Assembly (NCBI RefSeq): GCF_000143415.4
Contig: NW_003314359.1
Location: 467,477 to 531,476 of the forward strand
Direction of reading: 5' to 3'
Source: Selaginella moellendorffii
Taxonomy: Eukaryota; Plantae; Lycopodiophyta
DNA: 64,000 bases
Shown piece after piece: positions 13,878-20,576 of this stretch (the first letter of the stretch is position 1; the number at the start of each line of letters is the position of its first letter). Under the pieces are notes generated by a model. The model was not told the DNA's origin, did not search any database, and saw only the letters and a program-made list of their open reading frames with translations. Position numbers and translations under genes: made by a program.

Positions 13878-15125
13878 ATGGAAACAGTGACGGAGGCGAA
13901 TCATCGACAGCATTTACTGTTTAAAGTTCCTGTGGTGATTCTCAACACTGACGCCTGCATTTCAGTTCTGGGTTCGGCAGCGAGGCACNNNNNNNNNNNN
14001 NNNNNNNNNNNNNNNNNNNNNNNNNNNNNNNNNNNNNNNNNNNNNNNNNNNNNNNNNNNNNNNNNNNNNNNNNNNNNNNNNNNNNNNNAAGCGAGATTCA
14101 GGATGCTGTGTCTCCGGCTCTGAAGGTAAAGAGCTCACTTTAGTAGTTTTCCTCTCGAGCTAACTCGGAAGTGGTGCTGGACGTTTGTGTACAGATGGGC
14201 TATCGACATTTCGACACTGCAGCTGCTCATGGCACGGAAGAAGCCGTTGGGAAGGGCCTCAAGAAGGGATTTGTGGATGGCCTGGTGAAACGCGAGGAGG
14301 TTTTTGTGACATATAAGTTTCACCTTCTTGATGCCGGTGAAGTTCGCTCTGCTGTCGAAAAGAGCCTCAGGTAGTCCCTTCTCATCAAAGAGCGTCTTTC
14401 GGCCTCCTGAAAGTGTGATTCTGGTGGCTTTGCAGCGCTCTACAGCTTGAGTACCTGGATCTTTGCTTGGTCCAGTCCCCATCGAAGCTTCTGAAATCTT
14501 GCACATACCCTCCCAATCAGCGGGAGAGCGCTTCCCTTCCATCAAGCGTGCAGGAGATATGGGAGGCTCTCGAAGACTGTGTGCAAAGCGGCCTGACAAA
14601 GGCGATGGGTGTTTGCAACTTCTCAGCGAAAAACGTGAAAGAGATATTGGAGAGCGCTAGCGTGGTCCCCGCAGTAAACCAGGTACCGAAACTTTCGCTC
14701 TAGTTTTGGAAGTGGCTAAGCAAAAAAAAACACTCGATGCAGGTTGAGTTGCATCCTATGTGGCAACAGAAACAGCTCCGTGAGTTCTGTCAGAGTGTGG
14801 GCGTTCGTGTGAGCTCATGGCGTCCTTTAGGCGGGCAACCTCCACTCTCAGTTCTTAACAATTCCGTCATCAAAGAAATCGCCGAAACCCATGGAAAGAC
14901 TCCGAATCAGGTGGGCTATACATTACAGTCGAATGCTCAACTTTGTGCTCCAAATTACAGATTGCGCTCCGGTGGTTACTTGAGAATGGTGTAATCTCAG
15001 TAATTCAAAGCTACGATCCAGAGAAACTGCTAGAGTACATAAACTTGTTTGACTTCAAGTTTTCTGTTGAGGATCTTGAGAAACTGGCGAGTCTCGACCA
15101 GGATCTGCCATTTTATGTGGTTTGA
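13878..15125 (+). CDS. Aldo-keto reductase family protein with substituted catalytic residues; first exon spans the assembly gap
   Basis: GYRHFDTAAAHGTE, REEVFVTYK, YLDLCLVQSP, GLTKAMGVCNFS, PAVNQVELHP, HGKTPNQIALRW. Confidence 0.85.
13989..14088. other. Assembly gap (100 N)
   Basis: Run of N. Confidence 1.
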
Positions 15126-15248: not shown

Positions 15249-15855
15249 TCAAGTCGAAGAGAGGTTTGCTTGTAATTGTTGGACAGTGGTTGTTTGTTCG
15301 GTCACCGTTGTTGTAACGTTGTGCACGGTTGAAGGTGGTGGCGCTGGAGGAGGTGGCTCCGATTCAGATGGAGTAGGCGACTGCTGTCCATCAGTCCGAC
15401 TAGTCCACTGAACAAGGCAGGCAAGAATTACTTCTTCTTTTCTTCCTTAGGGAGCTCTTTCCATCATACCATGTCAAGCAGCAACTGGTACTTGAAGTCG
15501 AGCAAGTTGAGCCTCTCTCTCAGCTCGTTCATTTCTTGCGACCTCCTTGCGTACTTCTCTAGCTCTTTTCTCTGCAATCACGTCTCTTACTTACGCCTGT
15601 GTCTTTGTGTCTCAGGCAGGAAAACGAATAATCTCACCAGCCTCCGTCTGTCCTGGCGAAGCTCGGCAATCTCCGCTTGCATGCCTCCGCCGAAGTGGGC
15701 GACTCCAAGTCCTGTGCACGCTCCAAACCATCACCACGAAGAAGCAACGAAGCGGGAGAGACCGAGCGACCTGTTGTCCACAAGCCTTCCAAGCAGGTAA
15801 AGCGCTGGTCGTCGAGTATGAGATCGATAGGCCCGAGTCCGTCCAGCACTGACAT
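15249..15855 (-). CDS. Chibby-family (CBY-like) coiled-coil protein; at least 4 exons, exact start uncertain (possible extra exons to ~16030)
   Basis: Spliced product LGPIDLILDDQRFTCLEGLWTTG..MQAEIAELRQDRRRLRKELEKYARRSQEMNELRERLNLLDFKYQLLLDMWT plus a Pro/Thr tail; three GT-AG introns keep the frame. Confidence 0.7.
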
Positions 15856-17015: not shown

Positions 17016-18119
17016 TCAATTGACCCGGGAGCAATTGAGCCGGATCTGTCCATTCGGAGCTTGGAGCGGACTCTCGTTCCCCATGTTGATCATCCCAGTC
17101 ACGAAATCCAGGAAGAAGCGCGTCTGGTTGGACGCATAAGTCCACACCAGCGACTCGGCAGTGGAGTTGCCACCGATGGCGAGCGTCTCGTCTGAGAAGA
17201 GCACCCCGGTGCCATTCAAGAGATCCACGAAATACTTGTTGTCGAACACCACCGGCGTGAGCTGGTCCAGATCCACGAGATTGTTGTCGCTGGAGCTCAC
17301 GTTGGGGCACTGGCTCTGCAGCGAAGTGTTGAAGGTGGGATTCATGGCGTCCCCGGCCTGGAAGGGGCCGTAGAGGCGGCGCTTGAAGCTGGAGCAGTGG
17401 GATTTCCCGACGGTGTGGGCTCCAGAGAGGGCGACCATGTCCTGGAGCGACAGGCCGTGGGCCTGGAAGTTTGCGATGAGCGCCGAGACGTTGAAGGTGG
17501 GAGGTGGGAGGTTTGTGTTCGCTGCCGACTGGCTCGCGTTTAGGCTGTCCCTTCGTCCGAAGAGGACGCTCCAGGATGGGCCTCCGAGCTGCACGTAGCA
17601 TGGAAGATCAATTAGTAAATGATCATGGGATGATCAATATATCGCATTGTTGATATACGTACTGCGGTGACGCATTGTTGGGCGATCAAGACGAGCTCGT
17701 CCGCGCAAGACACCTTCCTGGGGCACTGGGCCTCGATGAGAGCCTTGATGTTGTTGACAACGTCGTATCCTCGCACCGAGTTTATGTTTGGGAACGCGTT
17801 CTGCTCGAGGCTCGCTCCGGCCAAGAGAATCGACGCATCGCAGCCCTGCATATGATCCATTGAATTCCAGAGGTTATATCATTTAAAAGAAGAAAAATGC
17901 GATGTTCGAGCTTACGTTCACGTGACAATCGTGGAAGAAGAGGCGGATTAGCGAAGCACACATTCTGGGCTCGGACGCCACGACTTGCTGCACTGCGGCA
18001 TGCACGATGTTGGTGAGATTCGGGCATGAGGTGGCGTAGAACGAGGAGCTGAGAGCTCCCAGTGCACAATCACCTAGGCTTAAAGCTAGGAATGCAACGA
18101 AGAGAAGTTTACAAGCCAT
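17016..18119 (-). CDS. Class III secretory peroxidase
   Basis: Signal peptide, [58 protein letters not shown]. Confidence 0.97.
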
Positions 18120-18769
18120 GAGAAACTGATATATTTGTGAAGGAGGAGATGGGATGTTAAGTTGCATTGGTTGAGTTTTTATACTACTGACGATGATCTT
18201 TGATAATCGTATCTGCAACGTACTTGATTCTCCCACCTTTTTTCCCGGAAAATTGCGTGAAGTAGCGTGATCTTGTGCATAGCTAAACTCCCCATGACTT
18301 ACATGATCTCTTGAATTTTATATATTGTTTTGGTGAAACAACTTTAGCAACTTGCTTTAGTAGTTTAAACATGTTTATAGATAAATTAATCTATGTGAGC
18401 ATATTCTAAGAACATTCTTCCCAAGAACAGTAAGATCGATCGAAGCGCACAAAGACTGCGAATGGCGCCTTTAGAATCATCTGTTTTGCTGCTCGTCATC
18501 CGCTCCCTCCTCCTCCTCCTCCTCCCCCATCGCGCAGCCATCGCGATGAGTCGTCCTCGAAATCTGGATCGGACTTCCGCCCTCCCGGGGGATAGGAAAT
18601 TTCCTTCTCGATCGATCGACGCTTGATCAGGCTCGTTTGCAGTACTCCGTAAGCGAAGATTTCAAAGTGTGCCTAAGCCCTAACTAACAAATGACTTTTT
18701 CTTTCGCGCTCATTTGCTCACTTTTTCAGCTGACTTTGGAAGGTAGCGAGGAAAAAAGAAAGAACCACC

Positions 18770-19893
18770 ATGGACGAATACGTGATGCATATGACTCGTT
18801 CCAATCTCTTGGACGTTTTGCTGGAAGATCTCCCGATAACAGCCAAGGTAATCAAGTACTCATTCGCAATCGAGAGTCAAAAATCTCTCTCTCGTTTTTT
18901 CTTTCTTCTTGTTTTGTAGAAAACCACTGTAAGCAGGATGATGTACGCTGCGAGGAATGTTTCAAAGGAGAATGACAAGGAGCGTCTCACAGGTATAAAA
19001 TTCAAACGATCTCTGTTCCTTACTCACGTTTTGTTTTTACTTTCGTGTAGAATATCACAAGGAGGTTTTAGAACAAGCTGCTGAACACATTGAGAGAGTC
19101 TCGGGCTTTCTCCTCATTTATCCAACATGCTGCCTACATTTGGTCGAGGTTTGCTCGTTTGTTGGCTTTTTACTGATAGAACGTTGCCCTTTCAGGCGGA
19201 GACTCCAGTCTTGATTGAGATTTTGAAGGTTCTGGATTCAGATACCAGATACATAGACTCGGTTTCAGTGTTTTCATTTACCGAAGACGTCAGTTCTTAT
19301 CGTTTTTACTTGTGTTTTTTGGGACGCTGACAGTGAGATTGCTCTCAGGTTCCCTATAGACTCTTCATGGGCTGGATGAACGGCTTCATCATCTCATCCA
19401 ATCTGGGACCTTACGAAGCTCATCCACGAAACACGCTCGTTAACGCTGTAAGATCCTTGCATTCCTTTCCTATTTTTTGGAGGCGATTTAGTACTTTGTT
19501 TTTCAGATGTCGGAGTTTAACATCAACATGCTCAAATGGGGGAAACAGCTCTCTGAAATGGACAGGGTAAGAAGATTGATATTTTATCTCAGTCCCAGAT
19601 TTTCAAAAGAACTTTGCTGTACCAGGAGCAACAAACGGTGGCTCTCGAGTCCATAAGAACTGCAGCTGAAGAACTTCTTCCCGACGACGCTGGAATCATC
19701 TATGGAAGTGGGTAGTGAAAACCAAAAATCTCTTGTTTGCTTCAAGCGTTTTTTCTGGTGAATAGTTATATTGTGTGAGGACGTGCCGAAGCTCAAAGAA
19801 GTTCTAGAGCTCTTTGACAAACGCCAAGCCACGATAATGTACGACGCGGATCTCGTCTGGCCCAAACCGAAGCTACCGTACAAATTGAACTAA
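18770..19893 (+). CDS. TEX47/MOT7/DYBLUP-like protein with BLUF-like fold (8 exons, about 235 aa)
   Basis: Spliced: VSRMMYAARN..VSGFLLIYPTCCLHLVEAE..LDSDTRY..EDVPYRLFMGW..ELLP..MYDADLVWPKP; all introns GT-AG and frame-preserving. Confidence 0.8.
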
Positions 19894-19948
19894 GTTTGGC
19901 CGAAATCGTACGGCTTGGTCTATTGTACGTAAACCCTAAACCCTCTTT

Positions 19949-20576
19949 GATGATGAAGAGGGGACTTGGATTGAGGCTGCGTGAAGAAGATTGGCCGGAG
20001 CACTTCGCTAATCCATGGTGCTGCTCGCGATTCGTCTCCTACTGCACGGGCAAGCGGATTCCACTGCAGCAGTGCGATGATCTTCGTAATTCCTTGTCAA
20101 TCAAGTGCCATGACGCGTCGCAATTTGGCGGCCGCGAGCAGCAGGGGAGCTCCTGCTGCCTCGAAGCCGCTTGCTTGAGCTGCATCTCGAATTCCAGTGG
20201 GCAGCTCGCGGGCCTGGATGGATTCCTGGGCAAGGCCGGAAAACTCGAGGGCTTGTGGGCGAGGGTGAAGGCTAAATGGTGGGGAATGTCCAAAATCCAG
20301 GACAGGTGCTTGCTGGTTCTGGATAAAGAAAAGCTTGCCAAGGCCTGCGCGAGCAGTGCGGTTGTGGAGAAGATCCGAGGATTCGTGTTTGTTCCAGAGC
20401 CCAGCGTGGCAACCACCAGAGGTCTCCTGGAAAACAATCTCGGGCTCATTGCTCATTCAGGAGGGTCTTGTGTTGCGTTGGTTGGATGGGACGAGGGTGG
20501 CTGGATCATCGAGGGCACACCCTCGAAACTAAGCTACGAGAGTAATCTGTCAATGATCCTGGTGCTTCTCGTGTAG
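19949..20576 (+). CDS. Hypothetical intronless protein
   Basis: ORF of about 208 aa from the MMKRG ATG, preceded by aaaccct motifs; no recognised domain. Confidence 0.35.

Follow-up and report, generated by a model that had tools for sequence, protein, structure and literature searches.

A Selaginella moellendorffii MOT7/DYBLUP/TEX47 orthologue with a BLUF-like domain, a probable subunit of the dynein f/I1 tether

We report that a 64,000-nucleotide stretch of the Selaginella moellendorffii genome (RefSeq assembly GCF_000143415.4, contig NW_003314359.1, positions 467,477 to 531,476 of the forward strand; referred to here as the window, with all coordinates counted from its first nucleotide) carries an intact eight-exon gene at 18770-19893 (+) that encodes a member of the MOT7/DYBLUP/TEX47 family of axonemal proteins. 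Our analysis indicates that the product is likely the spikemoss orthologue residing in the FAP43/FAP44 tether of inner-arm dynein f/I1, and that its BLUF-like domain most likely acts as a structural or a ligand- or redox-sensing module rather than as a blue-light receptor. We regard the protein as an expected part of the sperm flagellum; it is not a convincing new plant light sensor.

Results

An intact eight-exon gene

When spliced, the eight exons (Table 1) give an intact open reading frame (ORF) with a coding sequence (CDS) of 711 nucleotides (nt) and 236 amino acids. The ORF starts with an ATG at 18770 (context ACCACCATGG; the Diphasiastrum orthologue starts with MDDY) and ends with a TAA at 19891-19893. 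All seven introns are 47 to 72 nt long and follow the GT-AG rule. An alternative exon 7 donor, a GT at 19712, was rejected since the frame is kept only by the donor at 19708 together with the acceptor at 19766.

The public prediction P0019 (EFJ09389.1, SELMODRAFT_428126), located on scaffold GL377663.1, which matches the window, is letter-for-letter identical to the eight-exon model over residues 1-232; gene prediction carried out independently thus arrived at this same set of eight exons. Its cluster mate and haplotype twin, P0001 (EFJ34962.1, SELMODRAFT_406029), was retrieved by an exhaustive search with exon 3. Furthermore, a 198-nt contig from run X1 joins 19447 to 19507 and 19566 to 19626, with introns 5 and 6 removed exactly. 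Together, these data confirm that the gene is real and intact, and that the coordinates and exon number given when it was originally predicted from the DNA letters are correct. The original prediction had also described the gene as absent as a unit from the ORF track of the window, and the ORF list indeed holds only fragments of it. The gene is not missing from public annotation, where it forms the N-terminal half of a 436-amino-acid 'hypothetical protein'. All motifs first quoted for the gene are present in the spliced product: RMMY (containing Y35), VSGFLL (67-72), CLHLVEA (78-84), DSDTRY (97-102), RLFMGW (118-123), and DADLVWP (220-226).

Table 1. Exons of the MOT7/DYBLUP/TEX47 family gene, with the features of the encoded protein
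Feature	Position	Strand	Content
Exon 1	18770-18847	+	ATG at 18770, 26 codons; N-terminal region, low model confidence; same start as P0019
Exon 2	18920-18992	+	beta-1 strand (model strand 30-39), RMMY; Tyr35 aligned with the BLUF electron-donor Tyr
Exon 3	19051-19148	+	alpha-1, beta-2, beta-3: VSGFLLIYPTCCLHLVE; holds the family-invariant His80; 32 amino acids
Exon 4	19196-19288	+	alpha-2 and beta-4; DSDTRY, SFTED
Exon 5	19349-19447	+	beta-5 with RLFMGW; Arg118 and Trp123 invariant; 3' junction 19447/19507 in the spliced X1 contig
Exon 6	19507-19566	+	start of the C-terminal helical domain; NINMLKWGK; model helix 141-163; both flanking introns removed in the X1 contig
Exon 7	19626-19707	+	helical domain; donor GT at 19708, as in P0019; 5' junction 19566/19626 in the X1 contig
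Exon 8	19766-19893	+	last helix, C-terminal motif DADLVWPKP, LPYKLN, stop TAA

The protein belongs to the MOT7/DYBLUP/TEX47 family

Whole-protein searches used residues 1-232 of P0001 as the query, which carries three substitutions relative to the window. The Pfam family TEX47 (PF24787) was matched with an E value of 1.4e-23 (84 bits against a cutoff of 25), with residues 30-212 spanning positions 2-191 of the 192-position profile. A phmmer search of the PDB returned chain 8glv_D9, the 'Inner-arm dynein f/I1 light chain' MOT7 (E 3.2e-22, residues 10-229 against 14-233), and chain 9fqr_H0, bovine sperm TEX47 (E 2.2e-14, residues 6-230 against 22-250). Exon 3 alone matches Pfam TEX47 with an E value of 1.1e-6 (28.9 bits, cutoff 25), and its only two matches in the PDB are 8glv_D9 and 9fqr_H0 ('Testis expressed 47'); at the level of sequence, the TEX47 match of this exon is far beyond chance. 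Searched singly, exons 4-8 gave no match in Pfam and exons 4 and 5 gave none in the PDB, while for exon 8 the PDB search brought up MOT7 as a weak, colinear match (E 2).

Structure comparisons gave a consistent picture. An AlphaFold2 model built from a 13-sequence alignment has a predicted local distance difference test score of 79.6 and a predicted template modelling (TM) score of 0.75. Over residues 30-127 the model follows the BLUF-type order b1 a1 b2 b3 a2 b4 b5, and a helical domain spans residues 141-218; the solved axonemal chains have this two-part layout too, with a BLUF-like domain at the N-terminus and a helical one at the C-terminus. In Foldseek searches MOT7 was the best match (E 2e-15, TM 0.72), followed by bovine TEX47 and by the Leishmania chain 9y6s_7M, and then by BLUF domains with E values of 1e-6 to 1e-4; approximately 40 BLUF photoreceptor structures rank after the three axonemal chains. 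A further structure comparison gave figures of 24.5 for MOT7, 20.3 for the Leishmania chain, 9.3-10.7 for BLUF proteins, and approximately 8-8.8 for other ferredoxin-like folds. Protein language-model and Atlas structure searches gave the same answer. We take chain 7M of 9y6s to be most likely Leishmania LAX28, which is only 12-15% identical to the Selaginella protein and for which no sequence-level match was found.

Four residues, H80, E83, R118, and W123, do not vary among the 13 aligned sequences (alignment A4) and are also present in MOT7 and TEX47, and the protein carries the tail DADLVWPKP. We conclude that membership in the MOT7/DYBLUP/TEX47 family is secure, and the BLUF-type fold predicted by the model for residues 30-127 is likewise secure. 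The original prediction had proposed both. Homology searches against MOT7, TEX47, and BLUF match the first two end to end and leave BLUF below its Pfam cutoff.

The closest likeness is to MOT7 of Chlamydomonas reinhardtii: the two proteins are of similar length (236 and 238 amino acids), align end to end, and share a His at the BLUF Gln position and a VWPxP tail. They differ in that identity is only approximately 24-28%, that in the plants two Cys residues precede the His (TCCLH, against LCYIH in MOT7), and that the host belongs to the land plants and has sperm without outer dynein arms. Mammalian TEX47 (C7orf62, a sperm-specific subunit) is less similar to the plant protein than MOT7 is. It shares the PF24787 domain, the His in beta-3, the Arg-x-F-x-x-Trp motif in beta-5, and a DSExVWPxP tail, and sperm-restricted use is plausible for both proteins. 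In contrast to the plant protein, which keeps Tyr35, the sole mammalian sequence in A4 (Marmota) has no Tyr in the BLUF Tyr column.

A predicted place in the dynein f/I1 tether

The dynein f/I1 motors of Chlamydomonas are held to the doublet by a six-armed stellate structure, the FAP43/FAP44 tether/tetherhead (T/TH), with MOT7 at its centre (PMC10266980); axonemes of fap44 lose MOT7 (PMC5921573). TEX47, a T/TH subunit specific to sperm, makes contact with the f-beta linker in bull sperm (PMC11779644). All flagellate land plants, Selaginella included, have kept DHC1, DHC10, IC138, and IC140, while outer-arm heavy chains are absent (PMC9237703; see also PMC4361367). The host is a land plant with flagellate sperm, as first noted for this gene. 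Since the plant keeps dynein I1, a tether subunit is expected to be kept as well, and the finding is not very surprising.

By analogy with Chlamydomonas, bull sperm, and Leishmania axonemes, the protein would sit at the centre of the FAP43/FAP44 T/TH complex in the spikemoss sperm flagellum. There it would restrain and tune the two-headed inner-arm dynein f/I1, contacting both its beta motor and its linker. Such a role would matter in plant axonemes without outer dynein arms, in which I1 would be the only two-headed dynein.

The BLUF-like pocket

The Pfam BLUF profile (PF04940) aligned with residues 32-124 over positions 3-90 of 92, with an E value of 0.0064 and a score of 17 bits against a cutoff of 25. 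BLUF residues were mapped with a profile of the plant sequences against the BLUF domains of bPAC and OaPAC (E approximately 0.1) together with the Pfam coordinates, and this mapping agrees with the residue-by-residue assignment originally proposed. Two key positions are kept: the beta-1 Tyr (Tyr35, nearly invariant in A4) and the beta-5 Trp (Trp123). Three are replaced. The photoactive Gln of beta-3 (Q63 in AppA, Q50 in PixD) corresponds to His80, with FFQILEG of bPAC and OaPAC aligned to CLHLVEA; the flavin-binding Asn at the end of alpha-1 corresponds to Glu62 (Gly in ferns); and the Met located two residues after the beta-5 Trp corresponds to Asn125 (Ser, Ala, or Thr in relatives). The BLUF photoreceptors of bacteria and euglenids (AppA, PixD/Slr1694, BlrB, bPAC, OaPAC, and BlsA) therefore share with the Selaginella protein the beta-1 Tyr, the beta-5 Trp, and ITGxLL-like and LEG-like motifs, but differ in the three replaced residues, and the Selaginella protein scores below the Pfam cutoff for their domain.

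The position of His80 is occupied by His in 15 of 15 family members, namely the 13 sequences of A4 (from lycophytes, ferns, green algae, and a mammal), MOT7 (CYIHVIE), and bovine TEX47 (SILHILE). Since the His is invariant across the family, the Gln-to-His change is a family hallmark, and the suggestion that it might reflect degeneration specific to the plant does not hold. Kutomi et al. found that MOT7 binds flavin adenine dinucleotide (FAD) and flavin mononucleotide (FMN) weakly and considered flavin 'unlikely to be an intrinsic ligand' (PMC7909887), and the cryo-electron microscopy map could not show a cofactor (PMC10266980). The same His-type domain also serves mammalian sperm and Leishmania, where light is irrelevant (PMC11779644, bioRxiv 10.1101/782888). 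The replaced residues, the weak flavin binding of MOT7, and the use of the domain where light is irrelevant suggest a structural, or at most a ligand- or redox-sensing, module. We infer that the protein would have a BLUF-like pocket lacking the canonical flavin Tyr-Gln photocycle, with Gln, Asn, and Met replaced by His80, Glu62, and Asn125. A flavin-free structural derivative, offered at first as the alternative to a light sensor, is the better reading given the pocket residues and the weak flavin binding of MOT7.

Weighing alternative readings

Several observations weigh against our interpretation. The mot7 mutant of Chlamydomonas fails to avoid strong blue light, and MOT7 has the same His as the Selaginella protein (Kutomi et al., PMC7909887). 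The BLUF Asn was assigned to Glu62 at the margin of a local alignment that is itself weak (E approximately 0.1). As for transcription, the X1 evidence amounts to a single contig of 198 nt, and the run it comes from is only presumed to be RNA. This contig carries the variants 19397 T>G and 19441 T>C, both belonging to the other haplotype; it therefore derives from the other allele rather than from the window copy, and shows that this allele is spliced and transcribed. Finally, we found no CDS reads in three raw RNA-seq runs (approximately 12% of each sampled, tissue unspecified), in which the next gene is covered. Because the tissue is unspecified, this null result says little; the lack of CDS reads fits restricted expression and proves nothing.

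We asked whether the protein could instead be a BLUF-type flagellar blue-light sensor, as the original prediction had suggested, and we consider this unlikely. Homology to MOT7, with its mutant phenotype, speaks for a sensor, as do the BLUF fold, the retained Tyr35 and Trp123, a D99-x-R101 motif of Selaginella at the position of the BLUF DxRH, and a precomputed Pfam BLUF match on the fern orthologues. However, the Selaginella protein falls below the 25-bit Pfam cutoff, three of five flavin-photochemistry residues are replaced, MOT7 binds FAD and FMN weakly, and the His-type domain is at work in mammalian sperm and Leishmania. Lycophyte sperm are not, to our knowledge, known to respond to light. 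The photoreceptor role is the least secure element of the finding. There is a slimmer chance that the His-type pocket (Tyr35 and His80, with Cys77/Cys78 in green plants) binds a non-flavin or modified-flavin ligand, which might confer a response to light or redox state on the sole two-headed dynein in the sperm of spikemoss and ferns.

The extent of the gene was weighed against the public models SELMODRAFT_428126 and SELMODRAFT_406029 (436 amino acids), which splice 19877 to 19961 and so skip the last four codons and the stop through an intron at 19878-19960, leading into the ORF at 19896-20576. If this intron were real, the true product would be a 436-amino-acid protein in which the TEX47 domain is fused to the downstream ORF. 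Both haplotypes are predicted this way, the GT-AG sites exist, and the frames fit. Nonetheless, the unspliced end WPKPKLPYKLN* matches natural C-termini (WPKPQMPFKLL in Diphasiastrum, WPMPKEPFKWT in Ceratopteris), MOT7 (238 amino acids) and TEX47 (252 amino acids) end just after the VWPxP tail, the complete orthologues retrieved have 232-264 amino acids, and the stop is conserved in the other haplotype. Transcription argues in the same direction: one transcript contig, three times as deep as the TEX47 contig, begins at 19928 within the proposed intron and continues without splicing, and raw reads cover 19939-20100 with none on the TEX47 CDS. In addition, the downstream ORF can start from an ATG of its own at 19950, directly behind the telo-box AAACCCTAA (19931-19939), and the tail of the fusion has no Pfam family. 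A true fusion is thus quite improbable; the public model of 436 amino acids has probably joined the TEX47-like gene wrongly to its neighbour, and the downstream ORF (ATG at 19950, approximately 208 amino acids) appears to be a separate, more widely expressed gene.

Conservation of the Selaginella orthologue was examined between haplotypes and between species. The other haplotype (L002) differs from the window at 13 of 711 exon bases and 14 of 413 intron bases, and keeps all 14 splice sites and the stop. Nine of the exon changes are synonymous and four are non-synonymous, giving, from these small counts, a non-synonymous divergence (dN) of 0.007, a synonymous divergence (dS) of 0.061, and an omega of 0.12. 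The Selaginella protein is 58% identical to its Diphasiastrum orthologue and approximately 50% identical to fern orthologues, and 46 columns are invariant among six lycophyte and fern sequences. Our data indicate that the gene is under purifying selection; the counts are small but the direction is clear. An intact ORF with all splice sites kept in both haplotypes, the low omega, this conservation across species, and the existence of a spliced transcript together make it highly improbable that the gene is a leftover from the flagellar gene set, decaying or idle and without present function, as the missing CDS reads in the three RNA-seq runs might otherwise suggest.

Distribution of the family

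Homologues were found in Diphasiastrum complanatum, Ceratopteris richardii, Adiantum capillus-veneris, A. nelumboides, Tetraselmis, Myrmecia, a chytrid, and mammals; the fern proteins are named 'BLUF domain-containing protein' in UniRef. Word-index searches returned no bryophyte, gymnosperm, or angiosperm member, a result that cannot show absence since the method needs shared 5-mers. For this reason, and because genes with tiny exons are easily missed by annotators, we do not read the missing matches as absence from bryophytes and seed plants. The DYBLUP paper reported clear BLUF-bearing orthologues outside animals only in Chlamydomonas, Batrachochytrium (a chytrid), and Paramecium (PMC7909887). 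A literature search for a land-plant member of MOT7, TEX47, or BLUF found no paper, and the Selaginella gene is an unpublished but database-visible member of a known family.

Neighbouring features and side observations

Upstream of the ATG, the region 18400-18688, around a (CCT)n run at 18496-18535, is covered by reads of run X9 and by a 204-nt X1 contig, while the CDS is without X9 reads. This coverage may come from a long 5' untranslated region (UTR), or from another transcript, separate or divergent, that is shared with the peroxidase gene at 17016-18236 (-). On the other side of the gene, a telomere-repeat-like telo-box, AAACCCTAAACCCT, is located at 19931-19944, 38 nt past the TEX47-like stop and just before the downstream ATG. 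The telo-box is a common plant promoter and 5' UTR element.

A Chibby-like gene had been described approximately 3 kb away. An exon-sized open frame (…NELRERLNLLDFKYQLLLDMV) does lie 3.2 kb upstream on the opposite strand, at 15467-15577 (-), but its Pfam Chibby match (E 0.025, profile positions 70-99 of 114) is below threshold; the public annotation there holds only a 110-amino-acid ORF on the plus strand. Farther upstream, at 13878-14123, neighbouring genes are separated by an assembly gap of 100 N, which adjoins an aldo-keto reductase gene. Outside the window, the 200-amino-acid ENA protein P0003 contains three tandem units with SGFLLIYPRYMVHMLEVG, resembling the beta-2/beta-3 motif of TEX47. 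An artefact of repeats, or an animal TEX47 exon that was assembled wrongly, could account for it.

Discussion

Our data extend the MOT7/DYBLUP/TEX47 family to vascular land plants, namely lycophytes and ferns, and correct a public gene model that fuses two genes. They also call for caution with the photoreceptor label, since every family member examined has His where BLUF photochemistry needs Gln. Should the pocket after all bind a ligand that makes the dynein responsive to light or redox state, this would represent a previously unrecognised sensory input acting directly on the land-plant axoneme. Because plant sperm axonemes are without outer dynein arms, the function of the I1 tether and of its BLUF-like subunit could be studied in them cleanly, and Ceratopteris would be a tractable system for this question.
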